Positions 1-50,438 of a stretch of 64,000 bases of DNA are shown here, in pieces. The DNA is from Cyanophora paradoxa CCMP329 (Eukaryota > Plantae > Glaucophyta): assembly GCA_004431415.1 (NCBI GenBank), contig QPMI01000106.1:248001-312000 (forward strand), written 5' to 3'. The notes beneath the pieces were generated by a model, which was not told the origin of the DNA, ran no database searches, and saw only the letters and a list, made by a program, of their open reading frames with translations. The translations under genes were made by a program, and so were the position numbers. Numbering within the stretch: position 1 is the stretch's first letter; every line of letters starts with the position of its first letter.

Positions 1-182
1 CGCTATTTCTGCGCCTCGAGCTCGCGCAGCTAATTATAAGGATCGGCGCTCGAGAGCGCGGGCACCGCAGCGAAGGTCGGGAATTTGAGGGCGTCGTCGA
101 TCTCGCCGCCCGCGGCGCCGGCGCCGGAGGCCGCATCGTCGGATGGCGGCGGTAGGACCCAGTAAGTGCGCGCGCGCAGCAT
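1..182 (-). CDS. First exon of a tandem paralogue of the BTB gene at 850-4735 (runs off the window edge)
   Basis: ATG at 182 encodes MLRARTYWVLPPPSDDAA...EIDDALKFPTFAAVP, near-identical to the exon starting at 4735. Confidence 0.6.
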
Positions 183-20200: not shown

Positions 20201-22086
20201 AGCTCGTGCGCGAACCGCTGCGCCGGCGGGCTCTGGGACCGGCGAAGAAGACGACGGATCAGCAGCGGGCGGGGCGGGGCGGGGCGGGGAGGGGATGAAG
20301 AAAGGGGCCGCGCACGGAGCCGACTCCGAGCTGCCCGCACGAGTGCTGCCCCGCCGCGTAGATCTGCGGGGTACGTGGGCGGGCAGCGGGGGCTCTTCGG
20401 GAAGGGTACAGCACCTTCCCGGAGCGCGTGAGGAAGAGGCTGTGGCGCTCGCCGAGGGCGGCGCCGGCGGCCGGCTCGGCGTCGGGCAGGGCGAGGCGCC
20501 TGGGCATGGGCTCCTCGCCGTGGCCCAGGAAGCCCAGCTGGCCGTACGCGTTGTGGCCCCAGACGAGGAGCTCGCCCACGTCGGTCACGGCCGCCGAGTG
20601 CTGCGCCCCGGCCGCCGCCACCCGCACCCGCCGCTTCTCGAGCTCGCCGCGGACGCGCTTGGGCGCGCCGTCGGTGGCGTACTCGCCGGCGCCGAGCTGG
20701 CCGTGCACATCCAGGCCGCAGGCGAAGAGCGCGCCCTCGTCGGTGACCAGCAGCGAGTGGAAGCGCCCGGCCGCCGCCGAGACGACGCGCGTGCCCTCCA
20801 GGAAGTCGACGGCGCAGGGCTTCGCCTGGTTCTCCCGGTCCTCGGTCGCCGAGTGCGCCGAGCCCGTCATTGAGTTCACGAAGTAGCCGCTCGCATCCTC
20901 GCCCCACGCCGCGCGGTAGGACTTGCGCCCGAAGGTCGACGGCGGAGGCAGGCGCTGCGGCCGCTCCATCGAGCGCCCCACGATGTAGCGCTGCGTGTGG
21001 TGCTCGATCGCCGCCGACACGGGCGGCGTTTTCGTCCGGGGCTTGACGCTCATGTACTGCAGCTCCCCGCTGCGGTGCGGCGGAGCCGGGGGCGGGCTTT
21101 AGAAAGGTCGCGGGCGGGCGCGCCGGGCGGGCGCCGGAGCGGGCGGACCTCGCGGAGAGGGGCCGGCGGCTCTCGACCCAGCGCTTCACGTCGCCGCGGA
21201 GCCCGTCGAGGCTCGCCGCGGGGGACCGATCCTCCCGTTGCGCTGCGCGGCCGGCGCGTCGGGCCGGGCGCACGCGGCGCGGCGCGGCGGAGGCGGAGGC
21301 GGAGGAGGGGCGCACCGCTTCGCGTGCGCGCCTCTTCGCGCGCCGCCTCAGACTCCGTCGGCACGTACGGGATCACGGGGTACGACCCGTCGAGTACCGC
21401 ACGCGCTCGCCCCGCGCCGACCCGGGCCGCTTGGCCCGCCTGGCCCCGCCGCGCTTCGGAGAGGTTGGGCTCCGCGATCCGGGGCGCCCGGGCGACGTCC
21501 GCGTCGCGTCCCGGGCGGGGCCGCCATCCGCCGCGCCCGCGTCGCCCGGCGCCGGACTCTCCTTCCCGCGCGCGGCTCGGCTGGAGGTCGGGGGCGGCCG
21601 GCTGAAGTCCAGCTTCAGCTTGGGCTCCGCTTTGGGCGGCGGAGGGGCCTGGGGCCGGGCGGCTGCGGTGCTGGAGGGGCTGACGTGGGCGGGGGCGGAC
21701 GCTGCGGCGGAGGCGGATCCTGCGGTTGCTGATGCGGGCGAGGAGGGAGTGGAGGGGAAAGAGATCGGGCGGGATGCTGTGACGGATGAGGGGGGCGTCG
21801 ACGCTGCGCTTGGGCTGGGCTCCGCAACGACAGTGGGGGCGGGCGGGCTGGGCGGCGGCCTGAGCGCCGGCTTGAGCGCCGGCTTCAAAGGCGCGCGCCC
21901 CTGAGGCGTCACCGGCCGCTCCGGCTCCTGCACCGTGGCCGGAGCGGGCGCTGGGGCGTCCGGGGTGCCGGCAGCTGGGCCTGTGCCCGTCGGACTTCGG
22001 GAAGGCCCAGCGCTCGTGGGGCGCGGGGGCAGCCCGGACGACGAAGACCTCGGAGAGATCATCGGCGCTGGGCTTTGCGCCGACAT
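17207..22086 (-). CDS. RCC1-repeat (RLD beta-propeller) protein with Pro/Ser-rich N-terminus; many short introns
   Basis: Many RCC1 blades: AAGRFHSLLVTDEGALFACGLDVHGQLG, AAGAQHSAAVTDVGELLVWGHNAYGQLG, ACGSAHSVAL..DGSVWAWGNGEYGQLG, AAGGQHAAALTEAGRLFVWGSNLYGCLG, GEVFTWGVGAPGQLG. ATG 22086, TGA 17209-17207. Confidence 0.9.
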
Positions 22087-24421: not shown

Positions 24422-25040
24422 GCTGTACCCCGCATCTCCCCTTCGCTTTTGAGTGCACATGAACAGCCTTTTTGCATGCTGGGGTGGGATCATTGCGCAT
24501 GCAGTGGGGAAGAGGGGCCACTCGCCTGCGCAGGCTGCGCACGACCGTCGAACCTTTTTGAAGGGCCGGAAGAAGCTTAGAAAAATGATTATTCGAAATT
24601 CTTGGGCACAAGTGAACTGCGCGCATGCGGCACTGCAGATGCGGCGCGGCGCCGGCCGCCGTCGACGTCGCGCCCCCTATATATATAAAATTACCCGCGG
24701 CCTCATCTTGACTCGGCGATCTCCCCCCCTCGCGCTAGCTATATATAGCTCCCATATATATATGCATATGCATGCGCATGCACTCCCACCTCCCCGCGGC
24801 CCCTAGATCGAGCTCGAGCTCGGCCAATTAATGCAATCGATATCCCACCGGTACCTCCTCTCCCGTAATTCCCCTGTCCCTCCTTCGAATTTCCTCCGAT
24901 CGATATCGCGATCGCGAGTATACAGCTGACGTCGACCGCGCATCGATATCGGAAAGCTCGAGCACTGCGCAGCGAGCTCGTGGCAGCGAATTTTCGAATT
25001 CGAAGTGTCGCGGCGAGAAGATAGAGCAGCCGATCGCGAG

Positions 25041-28000
25041 ATGGCCGCAGCTGCGCATGCAGCGCCCGACGTCGACTCGCTGGACTGTTGCGTATGTCTG
25101 GAGCAGCTCCGGCAGCCCTCGACGCTCTCATGCAACCACACGTTCTGCCGGGACTGCATTCTCGCGCTCCCCGGCGTGCGCGAGGCCGTCGGCCGCCGCG
25201 AGACGGCGCGGGCGACTTGTCCACTGTGCCGGCAGCAGGCCCAAGTGCCTCCCGATGTGCCATGGCCCGTGCGTGCCCTGCGCATGCGCGCATGCGCTCC
25301 CTTGTCCATGTGCAGATCGAAATTTAAACTCTGATCATGAAATATTTTAATCTAGCCTATAGCTAGTATACGTAGATCGACGTCGATATTATCATGCATG
25401 ATCATGATCATGATGATATGCATGACGTCGACGCCTTTTGCCATTTTCAGAGGCAGCACGAGCTCGATGCGCGCCGAGCCAGGTGCTTGCCACCGAGATT
25501 CCGGCGGGGGAAATCATCCGCGGCCCCGGTGCGTATCGTAATCAAATCAAATCAAAATCAAATTAAAGCGTATTTTACGTACGCTCGCTTGCATGCACGT
25601 GATCTTTAAGACGAATATTGAATATAATATCAATATTGACGCGCCGCGGCGAGAGCAGAGATCGGCCGCGGGGCGATGGGGACCGTGTTTGCGGGGACGT
25701 GGGGCGGGCGGCCGGTCGCCTTGAAGGTCATCGAGGCGGCGGCGCTCGGCTCGGCAGGGGACCGCGAGGCAGCCGCGCGGCGCCTACGACGCGAAGCAGC
25801 GATCTTGAGGTGCGAATTCGAATATATATAATAAATTGAGACATCATTCGCACCCGCTCTAGACCTCTGCAGCAGCAGCTTTAATTTCTCACTTTCATTA
25901 ATTTTGCGGGCAGCATGGTGCGTCACCCCGGCGTGGTGCAGTTCTATGGAGTGGTGCGGGAGGCGGGCGGCGGGGTGACTTTAGTGACGGAGCGGGCGGA
26001 CACAAGCCTGCGGGCGCTGCTGGCGGATCCAGATCCGCGTCGGCGTCTGAGCCTCGCCGAGAGCCTCGACCTCGGTGCGCCGCCGCGCGCGTCTTAAGCT
26101 GCAAATTATAATTAGATGCGAATTTAATATTCGATTGGCTGCGCATGCGCGCGTGCGCGAATCGAGTTTCGAATACAGAAAGAAATTAAAAAGCCCTTCG
26201 AATTCGGATATCTAATTCGCATGTACATGTGCAGGGGAGCAGGTGCTGGCGGCGCTGGCGCATCTGCATTCGCGCAACATCGTTCATCGCGACGTCAAGC
26301 CGGGCAACATCCTAGTGCGCGCCATTCGAATTCCGGCCATGGCCACGGCTAGGCGCCGGCTTCTTAAGCTTGGACATTTAAAGCTTGCTGACGGGTTCTC
26401 GGTGTCGACAGCGACGGCGGCTGTTGGCACTTTCGCATACGCGGCACCGGAGGCCCTGAGGGGGGAGGTCCGGTGCGGTCGCGAGGCGGAAGCTGCAGCT
26501 CTAGACCTTTAATTAGATCTAGATTTAGATCTAGATCTAGAGAGGCGCTGCAACGGAATTTCTGATCATGATCATGAGCAACGGGGCCCACGCGCAGGCC
26601 GGATTTTGCTGCGGACGTATATGGGGCGGCAGTTGTGTTGAACGAGGCGCTGTCGAAAAAGGTTCCCTTTGCGGGCGTGCACCTCTATCAGGTCAGCAAA
26701 CATAAATAATAAGTTTGATTTTGCGATATTAATGCGATTCAACCGGTACCGAGATGCGGGTTTGCACACTCCGGTCGGCGCGCCCCTTCTTAGGCGCGGG
26801 CGGCAGGTAATGCAACGCGTGCTGGGGGGCCAGCGTCCGGCGCTCGCGACGGAGGGTGCGTTTGCCTGGTTGTTTCGTGCGTGTGAATTAAAGTTCGGGC
26901 CGGGCTCACGCACTGCGGCATGGGCCGGCAGGAGTGCCGTCAGCGGTGCGGGCGCTGGTGCAGCGCATGTGGACGGCGGAAGCAGCGGCGCGGCCCTCTG
27001 CGGAGGATGCGCGCCGCGCGCTCGTGGCTGCAGCTGCCTCATCATTGCAATCGGAACAGGTTTAATTTCCAGTTTCGCTTGTAATTATACAATATATCGC
27101 TCACGCGGGCTCATCTCGCGCACCCAAGGATTTTCCGGAAACGATCCAAGAATTCTCAGCGCGGCTGTCCATCCGGCATCAGAACAGCGGGGCAGTTTAC
27201 GAGTTTTCTGCACGGCATCGCGCGTTTGACGATCGCAATATCGTTTACGGAGGTGGCGATCGAGGCCCTAACGTTCAACACATTGATCGTGATCTATAGC
27301 TATATCTTTTCCGTAATGAGTGGGCGACGTTCAAAAATGCCTTCTCCTTCGTCTCCAGGATGATGATCAGCTCCTGCATCTACGGTGGCGACGTCGGACA
27401 AAGTACAGTGAGGGCCGAATCGGACATCAGCCGTCCGTTGAATTCTTGGTTTTCTTTTCGGAGATTTTTGCAGGGGCAATTGCAAGGCATTGTCCAGTTC
27501 CGTGCCCGTGCATCCGATTCGAGCAACTGGATCGACGTCAGCCGCACCAACGTTAACCCCGTCGTCCGGCTTCAGTGCGTTCATGATCAGCCGCAGCTGA
27601 ATTTAAGTAGAGTGCGGGGCTCATGATCATACTGCAATTTATATAATTACAGGGAGGGCGGAGAACTTCTGCTCGAAGTGTTGCTTGAGCGAGACCTCAC
27701 GGAAGAGCTTGATCGCTTCCGAACCTCACGCATCCTTGTCCGGACTCTAACAGGTACACGTATATACTTTGTTGGCTTCGAATTCCACATTAATATAGTA
27801 TATATTTGGAATCGCAGGGGAAACCCTGGAGTTGAACGTGCCCCTTCAATCGTTGGTGGAGGATGTTAAAAGGGGTCATCTGGGTAGTGCATGGCGCCAT
27901 CCCACGTGAGCTTGCGCTATAGCTATATATATCAATATCGTTTTATTCAGCATATGCATGGCCTTGCAATTGAATTCTCAACGCTGATCATGAATCCGCG

Positions 28001-28131
28001 GCCCTTCATGATCAGATCAGCAACGCTTGCAGTTTGAAGGAACACAACTCGCAAATGACTGCACGCTGACTGATTTCAACATACAAGAAGGGAGCACATT
28101 GTATTTAATCTTAGAACTTCGAGGAAATTAA
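25041..28131 (+). pseudogene. RING, TKL-type protein kinase, C-terminal ubiquitin-like fusion gene; probably degenerate
   Basis: CCVCLEQLRQPSTLSCNHTFCRDC...CPLCR; IGRGAMGTVF..VALK; HPGVVQFYG; IVHRDVKPGNIL; GTFAYAAPE; ADVYG; ubiquitin-like VRTLT-GKTLELNV...[12 protein letters not shown]...[20 protein letters not shown] is missing and there is an apparent frameshift in the ubiquitin exon. Confidence 0.75.
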
Positions 28132-28671
28132 ACTGGTACGCAGACTTGATTTGCAATTAAATCGGTTGCTTATGTTCTAGCTATATATAGGTTGTGCGAA
28201 TTTGCCGCGTGCGCAGTATACGTACCGTAGTACTAGTGCACGATCATTCAAATTAAATTTGTTCATGCTGCCAGGCTGCTAGTACGTTTCGACAGCTCGG
28301 TTTCTTTAGGATAAAATGTATATTTCGACCCACTGCGCCCGGGCGCCCCCCCTCCCCCCCCTCCCCTCCGGGATATCGATCCCCCCGCGGGCCGGCCCCC
28401 CCCTCCCGGGTCCCCCCGCCCCCCCGGCCCATGCGCACTCCCCCACCTAGTACCCGCACTAGTACTAGGCGCCGGCGCCCACTCGCCACCGCCGCCCACC
28501 GGTATGTATACCTGGGCACGGGCAGGTCCCAGCCCTGCCACTGATATCGATCATGACGCAGGTCCCCGCGCGCAAAGCGCTATCTTCATCGGTGATCATC
28601 GGATATCGATATTAATTACTACGAAGTCATACACACACACACACACACAATTACTGTCAGTGTATACGTCT

Positions 28672-28706
<35 letters not shown>

Positions 28707-28750
28707 TATAATACGTATACCCGAGCTAGCTAGCTTTTTTTAAGAGACAA

Positions 28751-29013
28751 CCGTCGGGCACTAAATTACTGCGGCGTTAATTAACGCGGTTTCAAAAATG
28801 GCCCTCCTCTGAGCGAAATACCGCGGTACCAAATTAACGCGAGTTAAACAATTTGAGGCTTGTATGGGGGTAGTAATTTCAGGGGGTACTGTATGGGGCG
28901 ACTTCTCAGCAGCAAATTACCGCGGCACCAAATTACCGCGTTTTAACAAACTTTTGGCGCATTAATTTGGTACCGCGTTAGTTAAGTGCCCGCGGTACTT
29001 AAGTGCCCTACGG
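28751..29013. mobile_element. MITE with CCGT- termini (pogo/Tc1-mariner-like)
   Basis: TIRs ccgtcgggcactaaa / ttaagtgccctacgg, followed by TA on the right; internal repeated aaattaccgcg(gtacc) motifs in both orientations. Confidence 0.65.
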
Positions 29014-30644
29014 TACGGCGCGGGCCGGCGCCGCGCCGCGCGCGGCCCTATAGCTAGGCCTGCGCATGCGCATGCAGGCAGCAGGCTGCAGGCTGCAGCT
29101 GCCTCATAAATCAGCCGGAGTCAGGCAGCCGGAGCTCGCGATCGAGCGCTAGCTCGCCCCCGCGGCCGCGGCCGAGGGCCAAGCGCTAGCGTTAGCATAT
29201 AGCCCGCGCGCGGCCTCACTGACCAGTGAGTCGGTGCCGCGGCACTAGTACTGCGCATGCCGCCTCACCACTGCCTCACCACTACTAGCTAGTATACTGG
29301 CATGGGCTATACTACTATATATAGCTACTATGGCCCTTCAAAGGCTCGCGCGCAGTGCCGCGCACTATAGCTAGTACTCATGATCATGATCAGTGACTAG
29401 CGCTAGCTGGGCATTGGGTCGAGTCTCCGGCGACTCTAGATCTCCGCCGACTCTCCGCCGAGTCTCCGGTCAACCGGTGAAGGGAAACAAAAAACACTGA
29501 ACGATAACAAATTAAAGTTTTTTAAAAGTCGAGTCAAGGGATCCGGAAGAAAAAGGATAAAGGGATTAAAAAAACCACTCCGGATCCAGATCGAGTGAAG
29601 GGAAGAAAAAGCACAAAAAATGTTTTTTGTTTGAAGACTTGCTCCTAACCACATGTATCAATGATGTATGATTAATTTTGTTAGTCGCGCCGGTCGATAT
29701 CGACGTTCCGGAATCCGGATCCCGGGCCACTGCAGTCTGCAGTCTGCAGCTGCAGCTGGCACTGGCCGGGCTGGGGCCGGGCGCTCCCGGCGTCCCGCGG
29801 CCCGCGGGCCGCAGCCGGTCGTTCGAATTCATGATCGGATATCGCGATCGATCCGGATTCGCGCATCGATCGCGATACTATGATATCCCGATATATCGAT
29901 CGATATCGATACCGATACTGGTAACGTATACGTACTAGTATAATTTAACAGAACGATTCGATTTCGATCGGGGCCGGGGAACTTCGAACTCGAATTCGAA
30001 GAAAAAGAGCTAGGACGCTCGTAACCACGTCTTATTACCTTGTTGTCCTGACGTCATATTGGAAAAACTATAGCGCTAGCGCCGCTAGCTGAGATGCGAC
30101 TGGTTGCATGCGCATATATATATATATATACGCATGCCGCAGTGCGCGCAGCGCGCGCATGCGCAGTGCCACGTGCACGGTGACATATATATGCTACTAC
30201 TAGTACTAGTAGTACTAGCTATATATATAGCTAGTGCCGCCGCACTGCCGGGCGCCGGCGCCGGGCGCCGCTGCATGCCGCGGCGGCGCGGGCCGGCCGG
30301 ATCGGAGCCTGGCCCCGCGATCGCGATCGCGAGGCGCCGGGCGCCGGCCGGCCGCGGGAGCTCGATCGCGAGCTCGCATGCGCAGTGCACTTGCCTCGCT
30401 CGCACTCGCGTCGATCGAGCTCCCATGGCCAGAACTAGAATTCGAATAGCTCGCGCTCCTAGGACGCGCCGGCGCCGCGGGCCTCGAGCTCGCACTCGAG
30501 CTCCCAGAATAGCTCGTGCTCCTAGGACGCACTGTACATGTCCCGGCCCGCAGCGAGCTGTGCGCGCGCCGCAGCTCTCCTCATTCTGCTTCAGCGTCCC
30601 GCTGCTGCGTAAAACCCGCGCTCCTCCCGCTTTCCCGCTCTAAC

Positions 30645-32032
30645 ATGCCTTGCTTCGCCGGTATCCTCAAGAGCCTGCAGCGGGCGACGGCCGTCGTCGA
30701 CCGCACCTGCAGCCTAGCCCTCGACAGTTTCGTCGACGTCGTCGAGAAACTGTTCGGGCAAGCACCAAAGCCGCAGCCGCAGCCGCAGCCGCAGCCGAAG
30801 CAGCCGCAGCCCGACTCCGACTCCGAGCCCGAGGTGAGCGACAGCGGCTCGGAGTCGGAGTCCCGGAGTGAGGTGCGCGCGCGTTGCGTCCCTTTTCCAC
30901 TTCAGTAAAACTCGCCTGATCATGACGCCGGCCGCCTCCTCGTCCGCAGACTCTGGTGAAGATCTCAACAGACGTCGACGAGGTGTGTGCACGCGAACGC
31001 CTACGTATACGCGCGCGCGCATGCGCGCGCTAGCGCTGCCGCTAAAGCTTTACACATATATTTATATTTCAGGCGTATACGTATACGTATACGTAATATT
31101 GATACGTAAACGTCGTTATAAAATACTTACACTTCAAAGACTTGTACGTACGCGTACGTATACGTATACGTAATAATTATACGCGTACGTATACGTATAC
31201 GTCGACGTCGTTAAACAATACGTATACGTACACTTGTACATACGTACGCGTATACGTATACGTATTCGTATATATATATATAAACGTATCGACCGGACCG
31301 CCGCTGCAGCTGACGCGCACTTCTCCTTTTTCGTTGCGCAGCTGCAGCTGCAGGACAATTCAGCGGACAGCGATGTGGAGGTGTGTGTTGCACGTTGCAA
31401 TTGCGCTGCGCTACTAGCAGCGCTAGCTATAGCCCTTTCTCGCGTTTTTTCGCTGACGTCGATCCGTCCGCGTATATCAGATCACAGCTGCAGCTCCGGC
31501 CGCGGCCGAGGATCCAGCGATCGACGACGCAGCTGCAGCCCCGACCACAGCAGCAGCTGCAGCGCCGGCGCCGGCCGCGGATGCAGCTGCAGCAGTCAAC
31601 GACGTCGACGCAGCAGCGGCCCCGGCCTCAGCAGCTGCAGCGCCAGCGCCGGCGCCGGCCGCGGATCCTGCAGCCGAAGAGTGCAGCCAGCGGCCGGTCC
31701 TCTACGGGATGATGACGAATATTAATATTGATTCGAAGCTGCAGCGGGGCTCCCGGCTCCCCAAGCCCGTCAGCCCCGAGATGGCAGCCCTTAGGGGCGC
31801 CTTCCTAGCCGTCGGCAACAACTCCAGCGATGTCGACGAGTCCGGCATGCGCGTGCGCAGCTGGTGCAACTGGCACGGCGCCGTAGCGGTGGAGCTGGCC
31901 TGCCAGATTGCAGCCATGCCATCAGCGCCGCGGCCGGGGCGGCTCAGCAAGCCCAGCTCGGCAGCCTCCTGCAGCAACGCGGCGCAAGAGCTGGCATGCG
32001 TCCTCGCAGCCATCCGGACAGCTGCAGCCTGA
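30645..32032 (+). CDS. Hypothetical, probably decayed multi-exon gene
   Basis: ATG 30645 exon MPCFAGILKSLQRATAVVDRTCSLALDSFVDVVEKLFG ending at a GT donor; final coding-like exon 31740-32032; no recognisable domain. Confidence 0.35.
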
Positions 32033-32067
32033 GGCCCCGGCCCAACCCAGCGAGCAGCTGCAGCCTC

Positions 32068-33212
32068 TGGCCGCTGAAGCTCGCTCCTCCATCGGGGCGG
32101 GCGGATTTGGTCTCTTGTTTGGCCTCTGAAGCCTGCTCCTCCATCGGGGCGGGCGGATTTGGTCTTGTTTTGGCCTCTGAAGTTTGCTCCTGCTTCGGAG
32201 CAAGCGGATTTGGTCTTGTTTTGGCCTCTGAAGCTCGTCCCTTCTTCGGGGCGAGCGGATTTGGTCTTGTTTGGCCTCTGAAGCTCGTCCCTTCTTCGGG
32301 TCGAGCGGATTTGGTCTTGTTTGGCCTCTGAAGCCCGTCCCTTCTTCGGGTCGAGCGGATTTGGTCTTGTTTTGGCCTCTGAAGCTCGTCCCTTCTTCGG
32401 GGCGGGCGGATTTGGTCTTGTTTGGCCTCTGAAGCTCGTCCCTTCTTCGGGGCGGGCGGATTTGGTCTTGTTTGGCCTCTGAAGCTCGTCTCTTCTTCGG
32501 GGCGGGCGGATTTGGTCTTGTTTGGCCTCTGAAGCTCGTCCCTTCTTCGGGGCGGGCGGATTTGGTCTTGTTTGGCCTCTGAAGCTCGTCCCTTCTTCGG
32601 GGCGGGCGGATTTGGTCTTGTTTGGCCTCTGAAGCTCGTCCCTTCTTCGGGGCGGGCGGATTTGGTCTTGTTTGGCCTCTGAAGCTCGTCCCTTCTTCGG
32701 GGCGGGCGGATTTGGTCTTGTTTGGCCTCTGAAGCTCGTCCCTTCTTCGGGGCGGGCGGATTTGGTCTTGTTTGGCCTCTGAAGCCCGCCCCTCCATCGG
32801 GGCGGGCGGATTTGGTCTTGTTTGGCCTCTGAAGCTCGTCCCTTCTTCGGGTCGAGCGGATTTGGGCTTGTTGCAATTGGGCCTCTGAAGCTCGTCCCTT
32901 CTTCGGGGCGGGCGGATTTGGTCTTGTTGGGCCTCTGAAGCTCGTCCCTTCTTCGGGGCGGGCGGATTTGGTCTTGTTTGGCCTCTGAAGCTCGTCCCTT
33001 CTTCGGGTCGAGCGGATTTGGTCTTGTTTGGCCTCTGAAGCTCGTCCCTTCTTCGGGGCGGGCGGATTTGGTCTTGTTGGGCCTCTGAAGCTCGTCCCTT
33101 CTTCGGGGCGGGCGGATTTGGTCTTGTTTGGCCTCTGAAGCCCGCCCCTCCATCGGGGCGAGTGAATTTGGTCTCATTTTCTGCTGAAAGCTCGCCCCTC
33201 CGTCGGGGCGGG
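32068..33212. repeat. Minisatellite, about 23 copies of a 50-bp unit
   Basis: Unit gaagctcgtcccttcttcggggcgggcggatttggtcttgtttggcctct repeated head-to-tail with few variants. Confidence 0.97.
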
Positions 33213-33323
33213 CCGAGGCGTCGCTGAAGTGGTTTTTCGCCGCAACAGCGATTCTTTGCATGCCATGATGCCACTAAATTTTAATTGCAATAGTACCGGC
33301 CGCAGACACTAGATAATGACAGT

Positions 33324-35223: not shown

Positions 35224-35314
35224 ACCTTTGCTGTATCTTTGATTTGTGATTGCTTTGTTGTCCTTAATATCACTACCTACGGGGGGTTCGCCCCACCGTA
35301 GGCTCTCATAAAAA
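35224..35314 (+). mobile_element. 5'-truncated non-LTR retroelement 3' end with 14-bp target-site duplication
   Basis: TSD cttatcgtaacccg at 35210-35223 and 35315-35328; the insert matches the 3' UTR, hairpin and A-tail at about 46285-46374. Confidence 0.85.
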
Positions 35315-35999: not shown

Positions 36000-38900
36000 T
36001 CGGCCCGCGCCGCCCGTTTAGAGAACGAGGACGAAGCCTGCGGGGGATGCTCGATGGCGGGGCGCGGCAGCGGGGGCGCGGGGCGGGGCACCGCACCCTT
36101 GCCGCTTAGCCCTGCTAACGCGCCCTCTGCGCCCGCCTAAGTGCCGAAGTGGGCCGCCGATCAGCGCGGGCCGCGCGAGAGGGGAAGAAGGGCGCTCGCC
36201 GGCAGAGGCGGCGCGGGTCGGCGAGGCGGGACCGCCGCCGCCGGGAGCTGCAGGCAGCGCGCCACTGGCCGAGCGCCAGCGCTGCGGGCGGGTCGAAGGG
36301 GCCTCGGGGAAACGAACGGGGCGAGCGCCGACGGGCGGCGGGCGGACCCTCGAGGGCTCTGAGCCTGCCGATGCGGAGCCCGATGCGGAGCCTGGAGCGC
36401 CGGGGCCGCCCCGCCCGAGGCCGCACAAGCAGCCGGCGGCGGCGACGGCCAGGGGCTGGGCACGCCGGTCCGGCGGGCGCTGAGCTGTCTGAGGGACCGC
36501 GGGAGCTGCCGCCGCGTCAGAGCCGCAGGGCGCAGACGGGGCGCGGGCGGGCGGGCGGCGGCCGGCCCCGCGCACCGTACTCGCGCTCTGAGTTGCGCGT
36601 GGCGGACAGTGGATGCAGGCGGGCCGCGGGCGCCTCGGGGGGTGCAGAGGCGCGGTCGGAGGCGAGGGAGGGACGGGCGGGGCGAGGCCGTGGGGCACCG
36701 CGAGGGTACAGGCGCGCGGGCCGCGGGCCTCGGCGGGGGGGCGGCCCAGAGGGGCCAGGGGCGGGGGGAGTGGCAGGGGAGTACGTCCGCCCCGCAGCGA
36801 CTGGAACCGGGGGAGAGGGAGGTGCGGGCGGCCCAGAGCGGGGCGGGGAAAGTGGCAGGGGGGTTGGTGAAGAGAGATCAGGGGAGGAGGAGGAGGAGGG
36901 AGTGGCAGGGGCCGCGGTCTCGGCGTGGGTAAAGCACACGCGGAGTCACAGCATGAACCCCGCCGTTGAGGAAGAAGCCTGCCGGCGATGGTCAAGGGCG
37001 GGGCGGGGTACACGAGGCGCGGGGCGGGGTACGGCATCCTCGGCCCCCTCGGCCCCCGAGCGGGCCCCCGCGGGAAGCGCGGAGTGAGCTGGCGGGAGGA
37101 GGGGGGGAAGCGGGAAGCGCGAGGAGGGCGGTTGAGGGGGCCTGCAGGAGCTGATTAAGAGAGACCGGGGGGGAGGAAGGAGGGGTGGTGGTGGGGGAAC
37201 AGGGATCGGGGACCAGGGAGGGGAACGGCACTTCCTCGTGTCGCGGCCGCGGTTGGCGAGGTGGACGGGGAGGGGCGGGGCGGCGGGTACCGAGGCGGGG
37301 GAGCAGCCTCCGAGCAGGAGCAGGCGCTCGCCGCAGGCGGCGGACGCCCCCGGCGGCGGACGCCCCCGGCGGCTCGACGTCCGTCCCCGAGACGAAGCAG
37401 TCGATCTGGGGGGCGTCAGGGGGGTACGGGAGGGAAAGAATTCGAGCGGGGCGGACGGATCCGGACCTCGGTTCCCCACGCGGAGCATGATCGGGGCCAG
37501 GCGTGTGCACGCCAGTACCGTCGACTCTGGCTCGGTGCGGGTACGCGAGCAGTGCGGGGGGGGGGGTACACGGCCGCGCCGCCCATGGCGCTGACGTTGG
37601 GGAAGTACGCGAGGGCGAACCGACGTAGGGCCTAGGGGAAGGGGGGGGAGGGGCAGGGGGTACAGGGGGGTCCTCAAGGGGGAGGGGCGTGAGGGGGGTT
37701 CATGTCGGGAAAGAGGTACGGGGGCACCTTGGGGAGGCGCCCTCGATGGGTACCGGTGCGTCAGCACACCCCCGAAGCCGTTCGTGTCGTACCCGGCCTG
37801 CAGGCCGCGGGTGGGGGGTGTGGGACGGCGGGGCGAGACGGGGCCGGGGGCGGGGCGAGGCCAGGGGGTACGGGAACGGGGGCCCCCGGTAGGGCGCCTT
37901 CTCCTTCTTCTCGAGGATCTCGTCACGTGGAACCGCTCCTGCGCGGGCCTAGATCCGGCCGTGTTCCCCCCCCCCCCCCCTCCCCCCCCCCCCCCCCCCC
38001 CCCCGGGCGGGCTCGCCTGCAGGGCGCGGACGAATTCCCTGGGGCCATGGGCGAGTCCTCGATCCAGGTGCCGCTGGGGTACCGGATGCCGCAGGGGTAC
38101 AGGGCGAGAACCGGGGGGGGAAGAAAGGGGGGGAAGGTTCTCCACAACGGCGACGCGCTTAGGGCCGAGGTAGCTCTTGATGGACATTCCCGCACCCGCA
38201 CCGCGCAGGAGCGTACTTGCGGGCCTTGACGCCCGTGTACTCAGCAGGCGGGCGGGCTCAGCAGCCCCGGTGCGGCCCGGTTAGCGGCGGCCCGGTTAGC
38301 GGCGGTGCGGGCGGGCTCAGCAGCCCCGCCCCGCCTGCCCGCCCCGCTGAGCGGAAGGACGGTCGAGCGGGGCGGGGCCGTGGGCACCGCGAGGGTACGG
38401 CACCCGCAGAGGCCGCCGGGCGCGAGCCCCTGCCCGGCCGCCTCCCGGCCGTACCAGCCGCGCTACTTTGATTTTCGCCGCCGCCAGTGGGGGCGGGCCC
38501 AGGTTCAGAGGCAGCGGGGCGGGCGGGGCGGGGGGGCGGAGGAGCGCGGCGGGCGGTTCGGGCCTGAGAGCCCGGGTCGATGCAGGGGGCGTAGAAGAAC
38601 TGGTCGAGCCTCAAGCCGTAGACACAACGAGGGGACGGCCGGCGGGTACGGTGTCGTCGAAGAAGGGGCGGGGGCGGGGCGGGGCGGCCTCGCGGGCGCC
38701 TGGGGCGCCGGGCGCGTGCCGGGACGGGCGGGGGCGTCTTGACGGCGCCCTCCAGGGAGCCGGCGGGCCCGGTCGTGCAGCGCGGGCCCGGCGGCAGGTC
38801 TCCGCGGGATGGAGATCAGCAACGCGCTCCGCGGCCGCTCATCGTCTGCGGTGCCGCCGCGCGTCGGGGCGCGAGAGCGCGTCGGGCGGGGGGACGGGCC

Positions 38901-40550
38901 GCACGGAGAGACGGCAGGAGCGCCGATCGGAGAGCGTTGCGAGGACGGCGGGTCTGACCGACGGTGGGGCCAAGCTGCGCGGGGTCCGCATGAGGCGAAT
39001 TCTGAACTCTGAACTCCGCATGAACCACAGTTGCGTGAACTCTGTAGCAGCGGCGCGCGCGGGGGCTTGCAATTGATTAGATCGGCGAGCTTGAGTGAGC
39101 GGAGCCGGAGCGGAGGCGGAGCCCCGAGGTGCAATTGATTAAATCGGCGAGGCGAGGCGAGCCTCGGAGGCGCCCGCGAGGCGGGCGAGCGCCAGTCGCG
39201 GCGTAGGCCGACGGGAAGTCCAGCACGCCTCCGGGTCACCTGCGATCTAGATGAAAACTCGGTGCGGATGAGACGCCACGAAGGGCGGGCGATCTTGATC
39301 GGCGAGCTTGAGTGAGCGGAGAGGAAATGCTTCATCGAACGAGCCGGTCCCGCCTGCGCGCCGGCCGCTCAGACTTCCGCACCGCTCACAGCGGGCCGCT
39401 TGGACCGCCGCGGCGTCCGCCGGCGCGCCGCTCGCCGCGCAGGTCGACGAAAGGTTTCAGCCAGGCGCCCCGAATTCACTGCCAGCTGCAGAGGCTGAGG
39501 GACACCGGCGTCACTGCCAGCTGCAGAGGCTGGGGGACAGCAGACGGGGCGCGCGTCTAGCTATAGCAGCCCGAGCCGCGCGCAGACGCGCGAGCTCTGA
39601 TGGCTGAGGAGGGCGCACGGCGAGCTTGATCGGAGACAAGACGGGCATGCACAGCGCGCCTGTGCCGGAGCGTAGAGGAAGCGCCGCGTCGAACGCGCCG
39701 GCCGCGGTGCACCTGCGCGGCGGCAGCTCGGACAACGCTTGACGCGCGAATCCGATGATCGCACGATGCCGGCGTCCCGCACCCGGCTCATCCGGCGCAT
39801 CGATATCCACTCGAGTTTGATGGCGACGTCGATCGCGCGCCTTGGAGCATCCACTGCTTCTCCGGCCCCCCCCCCCCCCCCCCAACTCTTCCCTCCTGGG
39901 GTATACAAGCCGGCAGTCGAATCGCTCGGACTCTCCAGCGGGTGGGGCGGGCAGACGACCAGCAAGGTCGCAGAGTGGCCCAAGCGCATCCTCCACGTTC
40001 CCGGCGGCGCATGAGCGTGGGGGCCGTCGGGAGAGCGATCTGCAAGCCCGAACGCTGTTCGGCGCCTGCAAGGGAGCGGTGCGTTCGCGAGAAGCGCCTC
40101 GCTTTTCGGCATCGGAGCGCTTTCTGACCGCTTCCTCGCGCAGGTCGTCTGCCTGCTCCTTTTCCAGGTCGACTTCGCCAGGTTCGCCCACGCCTCGGCG
40201 TGAATTCTGCCAAGGAGTGGAACGTACGCAGGAGGCGCTCTAAAATTGTGCTTTAAAGCGTTTGCTCATGGTGTGGCTCCCGCAGGCTGTCTGCTGGTCT
40301 CGCCTGGGCTTCGTCAACGGACGGAGTGGGCTTCTTCCGGATCCAGCAACGGATCCAGCGGTCGTGTGCGTGCTCACATGCTCCTTGATTGAAGATCTCT
40401 GTTTGCTTGCCTCGCCTGATCGCTTGCTGGGCCCTCGGTCGTGGTGCTGATTCGATCCCATTGCAGGTGCGGCGGAACTGTGGACGTGCCGCCCGCGGCC
40501 TACGACTGACGAGCAGCTGATGGCTCGCTGACGACCGGTGCGGCAAGCGT
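36000..40550 (-). pseudogene. Gene U copy 1: intron-rich gene of unknown function, rearranged and decayed
   Basis: Exons YGLRLDQFFYAPCIDPGSQ, MSIKSYLGPK, RHLDRGLAHGPREFVRALQ, AGYDTNGFGGVLTH and IDCFVSGTDVE; the first four recur in copy 2 (54230-54830); frameshifts are present. Confidence 0.5.
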
Positions 40551-40729
40551 GCCCACCAGCGCTTCTAGATCTGCTTCTAACGATGCCGCAGTGACGCGTT
40601 CTGCTGAGCAGGCGTATTCTAGGACGGCTTCTCGGCCACCAAGAAGATCGTTTGGTGACGCATGTCGCACTCCGGAACATCCAGGCCGTGGAAGATCCGC
40701 GGGCCCCGGGGTGCTGATGTCGGCCCACT

Positions 40730-43700
40730 ACGTTCTCGTCTGGCTGGAGTCGTGACTGGATGCGGCATCACGAATGTACGTCGCGGGAATGCGCATAGAG
40801 GTGCTCTTCGCTCTCTTTGACGCTTTGATAAACAGGAGCATTCCTATGTCTTCGTTGGCGGCGAGAACGAACTCCGCGTCACGCGCATCAGCAAGAAGGG
40901 CGAGTTCATGTCTGGACAGCATCTCCCGCATCACCACGTGATGAACTGGAGTGGTCATAAAAGCCGGCGTGGTCGCGTATGTATCGGATATTGGTTCGCA
41001 TGTGCTGTACCGGTTCTTGTTCTCCGTAATCTGTTCCTCCAGGGTCCTCGACAAGGACGAAATCAGAGCCTGGATGAACGACGGTTGCGAGCTCTCCATC
41101 AAGTTCAAGCCCAATGCAAATGGCATTGCCGACAGAATCCATGTCAGACACGATCTCGTTGGCTGGGCTTTCCCGAGGGAATGGCAAGACGCTCTGAAGG
41201 CCGACAAGCTTGTGCTGGTACTCCTTTTCCTTCCTTTTCCGTGGACTTCTTTGCGCTGCCTCCGACATTGATCTTTTGCTCCAGAGTACTAATCGCTTCC
41301 TTTACGAGCTGAAGGGCCGTGTGACGCTCGTCAACAAGGAGGACAAGCAGCTCGAATGCATTTTCGAGGCCGTCGCGGGCGTGACGGTCACCTGCATGGC
41401 AGTCGTGAGCTTCAATTCTTTCGTGCAACCGCTGCGCGCGAGCCATGCGCTGATTTCTCGCGCAGGACGACCGCGTCGCTACTTTCGCCACGGCAGGGCC
41501 CGCGGGATTCAAGCTTGTGATCTGGCACTCGCCGGACGAGCACTTCACCATGGACTTGGCAGCGGCCAACACGCCCATCAGCGCGATGTGTCTCGTGAAG
41601 GTGAGCCTCGTATTTCCTTCCCCGAGCACAAAGCCCGCAGCCGTCGTCTCATTTTCCGCTTGCTCGGCAGGGCGGCAGCTTCGTTCTCTTCGCAGAGGCG
41701 GGCGACACCCGCATTCGTTTGGTCGAGTTGAACGAGGAGAGCATTTGCCGCGGGTACAGGGGAATCGAAGTCTTCGACGTCGCGCGCTGCCCCGCCGCGG
41801 TCAAGAGCCTGTCGATCTCCCCCGTGAGCCGCTTCGCCGGCCGTGTCGCGGTCCTGCGGCTGCCCCTCACGCCCGACGCAGAGCGGCGGCATGATCTGCG
41901 CCGTCGACGTGAACGGAGACGCCTGGGGGTTCATCGCGGGCACCGAGGGCGCCGCCGGCCCCTTCGGCTCCGGTGCTGCGCCCCTTCCGCTGGTGCGCCG
42001 CCCCCGCCCCCTCGCCGGCGGGCAGCGCCGCCGCCGACTGCGAACTCCCCAGGGCCCCGCCCCCGTCGCCTCCACCTCGTCAGCGCCATCCAGCGCCCTC
42101 GCACTCTCCTCCGCCCCCGTCGCCTCGAGCTCGTCGGCATCCGGCGCCCTCGCCTCCGCCTCGTTGGTGCCTATCGCTGCCCGCGCCCTCGGCCCCGCCC
42201 CCGCCCCCGCCACCTCCGCCGCCCCCTCCGCCGCCCCCGCCCCCGCCCCTGCACTCGCCCCCGCCCTCGCCCCCGATCTCACGGCATTATGCATGCAGGG
42301 CGGGAGAAAGGTTTCCGTCGGCTCCGCTGCCCGCGGCGCCCGGACCAACCTGGCCCCGCCCCTCAAGCGCCGCGCACGGACGCCGCCGCGCCCCCGCCCA
42401 GCGCCGGTTCGCCCTATCGTTTCCACAATCGCTTTCTCAGGCTTAAGATCGCGATCGCAGGCGGTTGGTGCTGGGCGCAGCGGCGACCGGCGCCAACCGC
42501 CTGCGATCGAGTTCGGCTCCCCCGTCTCGCCGTGCTCCCCCGTCTCCCCGGATTCCTCGCCCCGCAATGAGCCCCTTCCGCTGGTGCGCGGCCCCTGCCC
42601 TCTCGCCGCCGGGTGGCGCGGCGCCGCCGACGACCGCGAATTCCTCAGTGCCCCGCACCTCCCGCCCTCGCCCCCGCCGCCAGCGCCCAGCCAGCTGCAG
42701 CCGCTGTGAGGCCCTCTGCGAGCTCCCGCTCCGCCCCCGCCCCCGCCCCCTCCGCCCCCTCCGTCCCCTCCGCCGCCCTCTCCGCCGCCCCCGCCCCGCC
42801 CCGCCCCCGCCCCGCCCCCGCCCCGCCCCCGCCCCAGCCCCGCCCCGCCCCGCCCCGCCTCCGCCCCGCCCCCTCCGCCGCCCCCGCCGTTTCCCCCGCC
42901 CTCGCCCTCGCCCTCTCCGTCGCCCCGCCGCCTCGTCGGCGGCATCCAGCGCCCAGCCCGTCTTTGCGGCTGCGGGCCCAGCCTCGCCGCTTTCCCCCGG
43001 CGGCCCGGGCGAGCCGCTGGTGCCCGCCGCTGGCATCGACGTTGCGGCGCCGGCAGCCGCGAGCTCGCCCATCGCCCGCCCCGCCTCGCCGGCCGCTGCC
43101 GTCCAGGACTCGCCGCTCGCCGGCGGCCGCCAGCTGGAGCCGCCGGCCTTGGCTGATGAGGTCGCGGCGTCGGCTCCGCCAGTCGCTGCGAGCTCGCCCA
43201 TCGCCCGCCCCGCCTCGCCGGCCGCTGCCGTCCAGGACTCGCCGCTCGCCGGCGGCCGCCAGCTGGAGCCGCCGGCCTTGGCTGATGAGGTCGCGGCGTC
43301 GGCTCCGCCAGTCGCTGCGAGCTCGCCCGTCGCCCGCCCCGTCTCGCCGGCCGCTGCCGTCCAGGACTCGCCGCTCGCCGGCGGCCGCCAGCTGGAGTCG
43401 CTGGGGCCCGCCGAGGGATCGAGCGCCGTCCTGGTGCTTTGCTCCCCCCCGCAGCTCTCACCCACCTCACGCTGCGGATTCACGGGGCAGGGGCGCGCGT
43501 CTGGCTCGCCCCGCGCCCCGGCGGCCGACGCCAACCTCCGCCTGGACCCCCGCCCCGAGGTTCGGGCCCCCGTCTATCGTTTTTGTACCTGCGTCTAGTG
43601 ACGGCATTGCAGGTGGAGGTCGCGTCAGCCAACGCCCAAATCACCAAGTTCAAGAAGGGCCTCCAAAAGGTGCGAATGCGCGGCGCCGGGCGCGGGGCAC

Positions 43701-44594
43701 CGATCGCGAACCGTCCCGTGGCCTCACGCCGCCGGGGGCCGGGACGGCAGATGGCGGGAATCTTCGACCTCGACGGCGAGCTGCAGCTGGGCGACAAGCT
43801 CGACGACTCCAACGCAGTCGTCGGCGCGGTCCGCGGCCCCTCTAGATCTAGATCTTGGGGCCGGGCCGGCTCCCTTGCCCCGTTGAATCTTGCCCCTCCT
43901 TCCGCAGGCGCGCCAGCTTCGGGACGGCATTGTTGCCAAGGTCCGCCCCGGCCCGGCCCGCCCGCCTGTCCTCGACCCGCTCTATCGGCCCTCCGGCGCC
44001 TCCACTGAGACCGCTGCAGATCTCCAAGCGCGAGCGCGAGCAAGCTGCGCGCGATGCAAAGCGCGCCGCGGCACGCACCGCACTCGCCGCCGCCGCGGCC
44101 GCAACCGCCAGCGCCTCCACCAAAGCCGCCAAGGCGGCCGCCAAGGCCGCCAGCGAGGCCGCCAAGGCCGCCAGCGCGGCCGCCGATGCCGCCAGCGCGG
44201 CCGAGACCCTCAAGAAGCTCGCCGCCCCGGGGCCCGCCGAGCCCCCCGCGGCCCGCGCGCAGCCCGCCGCCGCCGCGGGGCCTCTGCGGAAGCGGGCGGC
44301 CGCGGAGGGAACCGCGCCGGCGGCCGCCCCCGGGGGCCCGTCGAGGCTTCGCAGGCACCGGCAGCGAAGCGCGCGCGGCCGCGAGCCGGCGCTGCGGCCG
44401 GCCGGGCGCCCCCGGCTCCCGCCGCCGCCCTCGGGGAGGCGAACAAGGAGAACGAGCTCGCGGGGAGCTCGGGCGAGGCCGGCGCCTCGAAAGGCCGCGC
44501 CGCCGGCGCCCCGGGCCAGGAGCAGGCCTCGAGCTCCGCCCTCCGCCCCCGGCAGCCAGCCGGAGCCGCAGCCGCGGGGGTGCCAGCGGGCTAG
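40730..44594 (+). CDS. Gene V copy 1: beta-strand-rich (propeller-like) N-terminus, Ala/Pro/Ser linker, coiled-coil tail; possibly disrupted
   Basis: Exons HSYVFVGGENELRVTRI, VATFATAGPAGFKLVIW, FVLFAEAGDTRIRLVEL, AVKSLSISP, MICAVDVNGDAWGF; tail exons VEVASANAQITKFKKGLQK and IFDLDGELQLGDKLDDSNAVV; TAG at 44592-44594. Confidence 0.5.
43058..43397 (+). repeat. In-frame 129-bp (43-aa) tandem repeat, about 2.6 copies
   Basis: gagctcgccc starts at 43061, 43190 and 43319; encodes ASSPIARPASPAAAVQDSPLAGGRQLEPPALADEVAASAPPVA. Confidence 0.95.
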
Positions 44595-44871
44595 AGGATC
44601 TCTTCGCCTCTTTGCTTTCCATTTGCAGACCTTTGTCGACGATTCGCTTGCTCCAAGCCAATTCATGTCTTAGATTTCGCGAGACAGTTTCCCCATGCAG
44701 CTCTAGCTCCGGATTTCGCAGCTCAGCTTCGAATTTTCGCAGCTGCTCTAGTCTTTGTACAGCGATGCACAGTGCACAGCGTCCGGCTCTAGTCGTTCCG
44801 TCGACTCTGTGATGTTCAGCTTTCGTTGCTCTTTGCTGGGATGTTCTCTGTATCAGGGGTATTTAGTGCTT

Positions 44872-46438
44872 CATCGATGTTAGTTAGGAGCACTGGCCCC
44901 CTCCACCTTCCAGTTCCTCGTGTATTCCATGCCTTCCCTGTACCTTTGATTCCGTTCCCTTTGTCGTTAGCTCTGCCTCTTCCTCCTCCATCTCTCACTG
45001 TTAGCCCTCAGGCAGTTCCGCCTCTTTATCTTCAGCGACCGTCAGACCGTATAGTTTTTGGCAGCGAGTATTTTGTGTATGGTGACGTTCCTCGTGTGTA
45101 CCCTTCTCTCTCTTCTACTTCGCTATATTTGCCTCTCCCGCCTGGTTCAGCCCCATCGTCTGCCTTCCCTGTCACTACTGGCTTGCGTTTCGCCCCTCCT
45201 CTTATACTGCCGATTCCGAGTCTGCACCCGAGCTCTGCCCCTTTCCTCGTGTCGTCCCCAGTTCCTCAGATTAGTCTTCAGCCGTCCATTGTTTTACCAA
45301 CTCTACAATCTCGATTCCGTTTAGACACTCCGCCAGCTTCGACTTTCCCCTCTAGTGGTGTCCTACGTTTCGCCTCTCCTACTGTTCTACCGCCTTTGCC
45401 TCCTGCGACTACGTCTTCTAGTTCTGCTGTTAGCTCTGTCTTGTCGTCTTCGTCTAGATCTTCGTCTTCGACTGTAGTTCCTCGTGCTCGTTCTCCTTAT
45501 TTGCTGCGTCCCCGTGCTCCTCGTCGTTCTAGTGTGACTAGTACTTCTGCATCGACGCCCTTGAGCTCTTCTACTCCTTCTCCTCGTGCTCGTTCTCCTT
45601 ATCTTTTGCGTTCTTCTGATCGTGTCCTTTCTCGTGATCCCTCTTGATTCTGTATATATTTTGTGCTAGTTTACTGTATCTTTGATTTGTGATTGCTTTG
45701 TCGTTCCTCGTGTGTACCCTTCTCTCTCTTCTACTTCGCTATATTTGCCTCTCCCGCCTGGTTCAGCCCCATCGTCTGCCTTCCCTGTCACTACTGGCTT
45801 GCGTTTCGCCCCTCCTCTTATACTGCCGATTCCGAGTCTGCACCCGAGCTCTGCCCCTTTCCTCGTGTCGTCCCCAGTTCCTCAGATTAGTCTTCAGCCG
45901 TCCATTGTTTTACCAACTCTACAATCTCGATTCCGTTTAGACACTCCGCCAGCTTCGACTTTCCCCTCTAGTGGTGTCCTACGTTTCGCCTCTCCTACTG
46001 TTCTACCGCCTTTGCCTCCTGCGACTACGTCTTCTAGTTCTGCTGTTAGCTCTGTCTTGTCGTCTTCGTCTAGATCTTCGTCTTCGACTGTAGTTCCTCG
46101 TGCTCGTTCTCCTTATTTGCTGCGTCCCCGTGCTCCTCGTCGTTCTAGTGTGACTAGTACTTCTGCATCGACGCCCTTGAGCTCTTCTACTCCTTCTCCT
46201 CGTGCTCGTTCTCCTTATCTTTTGCGTTCTTCTGATCGTGTCCTTTCTCGTGATCCCTCTTGATTCTGTATATATTTTGTGCTAGTTTACTGTATCTTTG
46301 ATTTGTGATTGCTTTGTTGTCTTTAATATCACTACCTACGGGGGGTTCGCCCCACCGTAGTCTCTCAAAAAAAATTTGTTGTCTTTAATATCACTACCTA
46401 CGGGGGGTTCGCCCCACCGTAGTCTCTCAAAAAAAAAA
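44872..46438 (+). mobile_element. 5'-truncated poly(A) retroelement insertion with internal 616-bp tandem duplication and doubled 3' end
   Basis: Absent from the homologous site at about 48660-48670. 45086-45701 is repeated at 45702-46317. The 3' hairpin ctacggggggttcgccccaccgtag plus A-tract occurs twice (46313-46374, 46375-46438). Ser/Pro-rich ORF end with PRARSPYLLR twice per unit. Confidence 0.85.
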
Positions 46439-48941: not shown

Positions 48942-49985
48942 CTAGCCCGCTGGCACCCCCGCGGCTGCGGCTCCGGCTGGCTGCCGGGGGCGGAGGGCGG
49001 AGCTCGAGGCCTGCTCCTGGCCCGGGGCGCCGGCGGCGCGGCCTTTCGAGGCGCCGGCCTCGCCCGAGCTCCCCGCGAGCTCGTTCTCCTTGTTCGCCTC
49101 CCGAGGGCGGCGGCGGGAGCCGGGGGCGCCCGGCCGGCCGCAGCGCCGGCTCGCGGCCGCGCGCGCTTCGCTGCCGGTGCCTGCGAAGCCTCGATGGGCC
49201 CCCGGGGCGGCCGCCGGCGCGGTTCCCTCCGCGGCCGCCCGCTTCCGCAGAGGCCCACGGCGGCGGCGGGCTGCGCGCGGGCCGCGGGGGGCTCGGCGGG
49301 CCCGGGCGGCGAGCTTCTTGAGGGTCTCGGCCGCGCTGGCGGCATCGGCGGCCGCGCTGGCGGCCTTGGCGGCCTCGCTGGCGGCCTTGGCGGCTTTGGT
49401 GGAGGCGGCGAGCGTGGCGCGCTCCACGGCGCGCGCAGCTCGCTCCTGCTCGGCCTCCGCCTGCGACGCTGTCTGCCGGGGGCCGCGCAGGGCCGCCGCG
49501 CGCACGCCGCACCTTGCGGGCTGCCTTCCACTCGGAAATCTGCAGCGGTTTCAGCGGATCCGGAGGCGCCGGAGGCCCGATAGAGCGGGTCGAGGACAGG
49601 CGGGAGGGCCGGGCCGGGGCGGACCTTGGCAACAATGCCGTCCCGAAGCTGGCGCGCCTGCGGAAGGAGGGGCAAGATTCAAGGGGGCAAGGGAGCCGGC
49701 TTGGCCCCAAGATCTAGATCTAGAGGGGCCGCGGACCGCGCCGACGACTGCGTTGGAGTCGTCGAGCTTGTCGCCCAGCTGCAGCTCTCCGTCGAGGTCG
49801 AAGATTTCCGCGATCTGCCGTCCGGGATCCCCGCGGGCGGCGTCGGCGTGAGGTCACGACACAGCCTGGTGCCCCGCGCGCGGCGTCGCCCATGCGCACT
49901 TCTTCGAGGCTCTTCTCGAGCTCCGCGATTTCGGCGTTGAATGATTCGACCTCCGGATCCGGATCCGCCTGCAATGCCGTCACGA
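48942..49985 (-). CDS. 3' exons of gene V copy 2 (coiled-coil/low-complexity tail)
   Basis: Inverted homologue of 43600-44594 (IFDLDGELQLGDKLDDSNAVVGA, ARQLRDGIVAK, ANKENELAG). Confidence 0.5.
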
Positions 49986-50438
49986 TCGCGAGGCGCCCGC
50001 GGCGACTTCCCGCGGCCGGCGGGCTCTCTCATTCTAATTGTAATGATCGCATACCTCGTGATCGTTCTCGAGCTCAAGCATGGTTTCCTGCCGAGGTACG
50101 ATCGCGAGGGCTCAGAGTTAGAGGCCGCGGCGCGGTCCGGCCCGGAGCCGCCGGGAAAAATTCGATCGCGAAGGGCGGGGCGGCAATGTGCAAGCGGCGC
50201 ACGTCGTTGGCGTGCTTCTGGTTATGTTGCTTTGACGTGTTCACGATCATCTGTGCGCGGGACGAGAAAGCCTAGGGTGAGGTTGCGGATCGGTCAAGAA
50301 ATCAAACACCCGACAGACGAACCTCGCGGGGATCCGGAATCGCTTCGAATTCGCCCGAGGCGGCCGCGGGGATCCGGAGGTCGAACCGCTGCGCACTTAG
50401 AATTAGACGAAGCTGACGGCCGCAGACGAATTTTAAAA

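Follow-up and report, generated by a model that had tools for sequence, protein, structure and literature searches.

Across the 64-kb window, by which we mean the whole stretch of DNA analysed here, the sequence is interspersed with short scars of the form X-rc(X)-X, in which a 3-mer X is followed by its reverse complement and by a second copy of itself, and comparison of paralogues and of tandem-array units shows directly that such scars stand where their relatives carry a lone X, a gain of 6 bp. The excess depends on the inverted segment being 3 nt long, a second class of scars carries an additional C and G, the flanking bases are symmetrically biased, and the scars are present, and in places polymorphic, in independent sequencing runs. 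We propose that they are probably hairpin-type excision footprints of a CACTA/En-Spm (CMC)-like transposon that duplicates a 3-bp target and terminates in C...G. An earlier sequence-only reading of this DNA had named a hairpin-forming, break-repair or replication activity; its hairpin component stands, and it had not committed itself to a transposon. The C/G class and the symmetric flank bias, both absent from that reading, point to a C...G-ended element with a 3-bp target duplication.

Perfect X-rc(X)-X 9-mers occur 607 times in the window and merge into 444 chains covering 7.2% of the sequence. The Markov background against which the sequence-only reading had proposed to count them predicts 48-80 at orders 1-3 and 218 at order 5, the latter being a background that already reproduces the hexamer content; the observation is thereby confirmed and is statistically overwhelming. 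Almost every 3-mer is found as X (63 of the 64, with only a mild composition bias), and for X containing A or T the excess reaches 20-100-fold. When the filler between the two copies of X is varied, the reverse complement gives 458 matches, compared with 111 for the complement only, 41 for the reverse only and 134 for a direct copy; the excess of scars, approximately 8-fold, is confined to the full 3-nt reverse complement. The length of the inverted segment (k) is equally constrained: 594 matches are observed against 71 expected for k=3, 17 against 3-5 for k=4 and 5 against 0.3-0.6 for k=5 (absolute excesses of about 520, 12-14 and 4-5, respectively), and the 167 matches for k=2, with 100 expected at order 1, show no excess at order 3. 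Two earlier claims are thus borne out, namely that a mechanism and not a motif is at work, X being almost any 3-mer and the insertions being visible in paralogues and in the array, and that its register is fixed at 3 nt. Palindromic hexamers outside the chains (1605) are at chance level, indicating that the palindrome richness of the window comes entirely from scar events, and the excess of one-mismatch forms (600-860) is about equal to that of perfect forms (about 550), which fits a long, steady accumulation of scars accompanied by mutational decay.

The polarity of the event is given by paralogues within the window (Table 1). Half of the clean 6-bp indels between them (7 of 14) are X versus X-rc(X)-X, and further cases are split by the aligner, in agreement with the earlier claim that paralogues repeatedly differ by this step; the positions given there for the scars at 15-23, 214-222, 32871-32879 and 52669-53047 were all correct on re-checking. 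In the alignment of the paralogous arms 39391-40547 and 53847-52628, the segment 52669-53047 holds five scars, each opposite a lone 3-mer in the segment 40179-40500, and every scar adds 6 bases (12 for the one with two rounds), some of them divided by the aligner. In all these comparisons, and in the array units, both copies of X flank the inverted nucleotides where the relative has a lone X, as an excision footprint should. The window contains large, nested duplications, both inverted and direct, of 75-100% identity (36250-44870 versus 48665-58300, 40727-43083 versus 62255-64000, and 50502-50894 versus 62065-62449). Palindromic 4-bp indels between paralogues (GCGC, GATC and CGCG, at 39580, 39789, 40137 and 40305) were also seen; they match the same grammar with a 2-nt X and show no statistical excess over an order-3 background. 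At about 52759-52772, a 7-nt inverted duplication has produced the 12-bp palindrome GGCCCATGGGCC where the paralogue reads only TGGGCC; this palindromic addition has no flanking repeat, suggesting a different footprint type or another element family.

The 50-bp tandem array shows the same polarity. The units adjoining the scar at 32871-32879 carry plain TTG at the corresponding place, and hence the 6-bp insertion is the derived state, as the sequence-only reading had held for this one unit. The array sits within long minus-strand open reading frames (ORFs) of up to 519 codons, for which no Pfam family was found.

Table 1. Scars, scar-bearing stretches and reference features in the window.
Feature	Positions	Strand	Remark
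CTCGAGCTC (CTC-GAG-CTC)	15-23	.	CTC in paralogue at ~4571
ATTAATATT (ATT-AAT-ATT)	214-222	.	ATT in paralogue at ~4767; alignment gap is the 6-bp ATTAAT
ATA-C-TAT-G-ATA	10025-10035	.	Example of X-C-rc(X)-G-X; others at 1123, 9245 and 47346
RCC1-repeat gene	17213-22062	-	Exon model verified against EukProt tig00000430_g653.t1
Four in-frame scars (26325, 26337, 26352, 26363)	26325-26371	+	In a protein-kinase reading frame
1083-bp stretch with 33 X-rc(X)-X matches	28987-30069	.	No other letters and no gaps in the contig of each of four runs
Polymorphic 7-bp insertion CCTAGGG behind 30622	30616-30630	.	In contigs of X1, X2 and X9; variant is CCT-AGG-G-CCT, a scar plus an additional G
Multi-round chains and (TACGTA)n-type arrays	31075-31282	.	
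AAT-ATT-AAT-ATT chain (AATATTAATATT)	31718-31729	.	One 6-bp unit missing in X1 and X9, kept in X2 and X16
50-bp tandem array	32068-33213		22.7 copies, 92% matches
TTGCAATTG (TTG-CAA-TTG)	32871-32879		Sole X-rc(X)-X 9-mer within 32060-33220
TAG-CTA-TAG	39558-39566	.	Further case in the alignment 39391-40547 versus 53847-52628; left arm only
CAT-ATG-CAT	48613-48621	.	One of two indels between the 97.5%-identical inverted arms 46437-46961 and 48137-48662
CTA-TAG-CTA	50618-50626	.	Missing from direct paralogue 62065-62449
GCATGCGCA	from 52669	.	Single 3-mer in paralogue arm 40.1-40.5 kb
CACGTGCAC	from 52717	.	Single 3-mer in paralogue arm 40.1-40.5 kb
AAGCTTAAGCTTAAG	52869-52883	.	Two rounds; single 3-mer in paralogue arm 40.1-40.5 kb
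CTGCAGCTG	53039-53047	.	Single 3-mer in paralogue arm 40.1-40.5 kb

The form X-C-rc(X)-G-X makes up the second class, with 43 occurrences against 8.7 expected; the C/G pair is the only one in excess, the other 15 letter pairs in X-N-rc(X)-N-X being at chance level, and its X is diverse (e.g. ATA, TGT, TCA and GTA). One-sided forms were considered and dropped as evidence: X-C-rc(X)-X and X-rc(X)-G-X are enriched only about twofold, and so is X-G-rc(X)-X. The same two letters recur beside the isolated scars, where C is found at -1 with a frequency of 0.43 (background 0.32) and G at +1 with 0.41 (background 0.33), a twofold-symmetric bias of the kind usually shown by dimeric integrases or transposases working across a 3-bp stagger. 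The product itself is remarkably uniform, since plain X-X duplications are at 1.0 times expectation in the window and the partial palindromic additions tested there reach 1.06-1.4 times, no more than unrelated fillers. Heterogeneous donor-site repair is expected of excision footprints, and enrichment was found only for the full 3-nt inverted copy; in this uniformity the scars are unlike known excision repair.

A route by which a transposon could leave such scars can be proposed. Insertion would double the target 3-mer to give L-X-[C...G]-X-R, and excision by the transposase would leave a covalently closed hairpin on each flank. A host nuclease would then open the hairpins off the tip, yielding L-X-rc(X) from the left flank and rc(X)-X-R from the right one; as both flanks end in the same X, the palindromic tails would share exactly rc(X), 3 nt, through which they could anneal, and filling of the gaps would give L-X-rc(X)-X-R with a net gain of 6 bp. 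Working through the strands, opening 3 nt from the tip leaves a 3-bp overlap and opening 2 nt from it a 1-bp overlap, both leading to the same product, which implies that the register would be set by the length of the target duplication and not by the nuclease. If the first nick fell one base inside the element, a terminal C would remain unpaired at each tip and X-C-rc(X)-G-X would result, on both strands, so the C/G class is what a C...G-ended element would leave. Of the origins suggested by the sequence-only reading, a hairpin, P-nucleotide-like one fits the scars best. Against the proposed route, X-C-rc(X)-G-X occurs far more often than it would if each end kept its C independently of the other, suggesting that the two ends are coordinated or that a second element family contributes.

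The attributes of the presumed element have to be read from the scars themselves and not from resident copies: the duplicated target would be 3 bp long and sequence-unspecific, and of the CACT(A/G)...(C/T)AGTG ends the scars imply, through the second class, the outermost C and G only. A search of the 64 kb for CACT(A/G)...(C/T)AGTG pairs with a matching 3-mer returned 10 against 6.8 expected and yielded no pair of terminal inverted repeats that was convincing. In the same window, CACTA...TAGTG and CAC...GTG pairs flanked by matching 3-mers, as well as exact 11-nt inverted repeat pairs with 2-9-bp duplications, were at chance level, and no intact element combining a 3-bp duplication with C...G or CACTA ends was recovered. 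A Pfam scan of 20 window ORFs returned RCC1, an Ulp1 protease and a weak CAP_C and no transposase domain, and no element-occupied allele of a scar site was seen among the window's paralogues or at the contig joints of four runs over 26100-32060. As neither such an element nor a transposase was found in the window, the participation of a transposon, like the hairpins and the joining route, is an inference.

Several other insertions and ORFs were noted along the way. A ~265-bp element at 28750-29014 has inverted ends (ACCGTnGGGCACT...) and subterminal repeats, and its contig depth in four runs, which exceeds that of the adjacent sequence 20-100 times, indicates that it is high-copy in the genome; it was rejected as the source of the scars, for in spite of an internal CACT motif its flanks are ACA/ACG (GGG/CCC if cut at CACT), with no clean 3-bp duplication. 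The larger insertions at paralogue-block breakpoints (38997-39391, 38199-38457 and 57804-57954) were likewise rejected as elements, having neither inverted ends nor a duplication. A 1.56-kb insertion at 44872-46436 is present in one arm of an inverted duplication, with the empty site at 48663-48664 in the other; its poly-A end gives it the look of a retroposon, unrelated to the scars, and it holds perfect tandem duplications of 616 bp (two copies) and 62 bp (two copies), with a further copy of the 62-bp unit at 35254-35314. An Ulp1-protease-like ORF on the minus strand (50439-51653) lies in a segment present in three copies; a protein search gave no close relative of it, and exact-match contig look-ups came back empty. 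A tRNA-like sequence with D-arm and T-arm motifs occurs at 318-400 and 4818-4890 within a 450-bp direct repeat; ARAGORN and Rfam scans were both empty, with no tRNA called, and a tRNA-derived element and a tRNA gene broken by small insertions are both conceivable.

That the scars could have been created during assembly or sequencing is an explanation to which we assign practically no weight. Sampled 31-mers of 24500-30500 were present at 92-93% in twenty DNA runs from twenty studies (one of 2019, the rest of 2024), and over 26100-32060 the contigs of four runs (X1, X2, X9 and X16) reproduce scar-rich stretches with zero differences. The sequence-only reading had wanted raw reads from independent chemistries; ours are Logan contigs, which match the scars and show presence and allelic or paralogous variation rather than frequencies, and an assembly artefact is excluded for the stretch tested. 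The same contigs reveal polymorphism at 30616-30630 and 31718-31729 (Table 1), and near 31483 a 6-bp palindromic insertion is found in X2 only. The variable unit at 31718 belongs to a two-unit chain, in which slippage is possible, and chains of 12-29 nt and (TACGTA)n arrays do exist in the window; the chains and arrays at 31075-31282 record either repeated events or scar units that slipped afterwards. As the origin of the scars, nevertheless, slippage or tandem duplication acting on palindromic hexamers already present, with no special process behind it, is very improbable: isolated 9-mers account for 357 of the 444 chains, the inserted unit in these cases adjoins a lone X and does not duplicate an identical neighbour, the paralogues offer no adjacent rc(X) to be copied, palindromic hexamers outside scars are no commoner than chance predicts, and slippage can do no more than lengthen an existing scar. 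The paralogue alignments refute it as the primary cause, and it is likely a secondary process. Replication template switching, in which the nascent strand copies 3 nt of the complementary strand and returns to leave a micro inverted triplication, is a known source of short inverted copies of adjacent sequence and would suit the local clustering of the scars (75 inter-chain gaps of 1-10 nt against 41 expected). It predicts a spread of lengths, yet among inverted segments of k=2-5 no broad distribution was found and 3 nt dominates by a factor of over 30 in absolute excess; template switching also leaves the C/G class and the symmetric flank bias unexplained, and 3-nt pairing is too weak for reliable priming. 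We therefore regard it as improbable, and the fork template-switching option of the sequence-only reading is disfavoured by the sharp 3-nt preference.

A stronger competitor, which we consider unlikely overall, is a host activity independent of any transposon, in which a domesticated transposase or hairpin nuclease makes 3-bp staggered breaks at loosely C-NNN-G sites, caps them as hairpins and lets them be joined in the same way. Some 450 scars in a window where no resident element or transposase was found, an extremely uniform outcome and the symmetric flank bias all speak for it, and the failure to find an element or a transposase, the uniformity of the product and the C/G excess are the reasons for keeping a host hairpin nuclease as a live rival. 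Such an activity would, however, leave the additional C and G of the second class without an origin, its staggered break would need fill-in on both ends before capping in order to give X twice, and no activity of this kind has been described. We also entertain, as a speculative idea with a fairly small chance of being right, that this genome possesses a dedicated route for sealing hairpin-capped breaks, one that is close to deterministic and invariably converts X to X-rc(X)-X, either coupled to an unusual transposase or as an element-free host mutator; it would then rank among the chief sources of intergenic DNA and of two-residue protein insertions.

The scars are unevenly spread. Their density is 4.4 per kb in bins above 70% G+C and 7.6-9.6 per kb otherwise. 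The only gene with a verified model, the RCC1-repeat gene, has exon blocks essentially identical to its EukProt counterpart, most at 100%, and holds 10 scar matches in 4.85 kb, near chance, against 7-22 chains per kb in intergenic stretches. Introns in this gene are numerous and very short (about 50-65 nt), and since several preserve the frame, a 926-codon ORF reads through them. A protein-kinase reading frame was recognised at 26250-26460 on the plus strand (HRDVKPGNILV ... KLADGF), and its four in-frame scars lie between the HRDxKxxN and DFG-like motifs, where about 8 residues are added to the spacer.

The pair counts allow an estimate of the rate. In the arm pair at 39.4-40.5 kb, 6 scar events accompany about 90 substitutions; the 97.5%-identical pair 46437/48662 has 1 scar event and 2 substitutions, and other paralogue pairs have few or no scar events. 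Taken with the equilibrium density, these counts suggest a scar rate of about 1-7% of the per-site substitution rate, which for a 100-Mb genome would amount to about one event per thousand generations or fewer, so that ordinary sustained transposon activity would be enough. The very high rate postulated by the sequence-only reading is therefore not needed to account for the density.

Should the scars prove to be excision footprints, past transposition would be recorded in this genome as a readable and datable ledger of about 7 perfect entries per kb, together with a similar number that have one mismatch, from which the flux of elements could be measured directly. The ledger would also offer genome-scale evidence on how CACTA donor sites are cut, in that the flanks would form hairpins and the first nick would fall at the junction or one base inside it; as far as we know, this cutting is not settled biochemically. 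Since scars add 6 bp, reading frames are kept, and the old idea that transposon footprints generate useful sequence diversity would become testable. Perfect scars make up at least 7% of the window and, together with decayed ones, could make up about 10-25%; such DNA would escape repeat annotation, and the dense restriction-site-like palindromes affect alignment, variant calling and bisulfite analysis.

The sequence-only reading knew of no described process of this density. We found no description of the X-rc(X)-X signature in the literature, and the 2019 Cyanophora paradoxa genome paper, which puts the repeat content at 29.4%, has no word that starts with 'palindrom'. There is nonetheless a precedent for the type of scar. 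Among plant superfamilies, CACTA is the one listed with CACT(A/G) ends and a 3-bp target of variable sequence (PMC4423477, Table 1), and the carnation CACTA element dTac1, with the duplication TGG, left the footprints TGCATGG and TGGCCGG (PMC3859356), which we read as trimmed versions of TGG-CCA-TGG and thus of the same structure. We are therefore dealing with a known type of scar, the uniformity and density of which we could not find described.

Among known systems, template-switch mutations and quasi-palindrome correction also make an inverted copy of adjacent sequence, but they have neither a fixed length nor a C/G class or symmetric target bias, unlike the scars described here. The CACTA/En-Spm footprints of plants (dTac1 of carnation, Tdv1 of dahlia, Tam1 and Spm) share with them the 3-bp duplication, the retention of both copies and the inverted flank nucleotides in between, and the elements concerned have C...G ends, as implied by the second scar class. 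Those footprints are heterogeneous and usually trimmed by 1-2 bases, whereas here the full rc(X) is almost always kept, at about 7 chains per kb in a window in which no donor element was seen. For hAT, Transib, MULE and RAG, the formation of flank hairpins is established (PMC5499845). Excision of hAT, Transib and MULE elements, like the P nucleotides of V(D)J recombination, gives palindromic additions from the flank ends through hairpin opening, as proposed here; the duplications in these systems are 8, 5 or 9 bp or none, and the P tracts vary, mostly between 1 and 4 nt, in contrast to the fixed 3 nt of the present scars, which we attribute to a microhomology limited by the target duplication.
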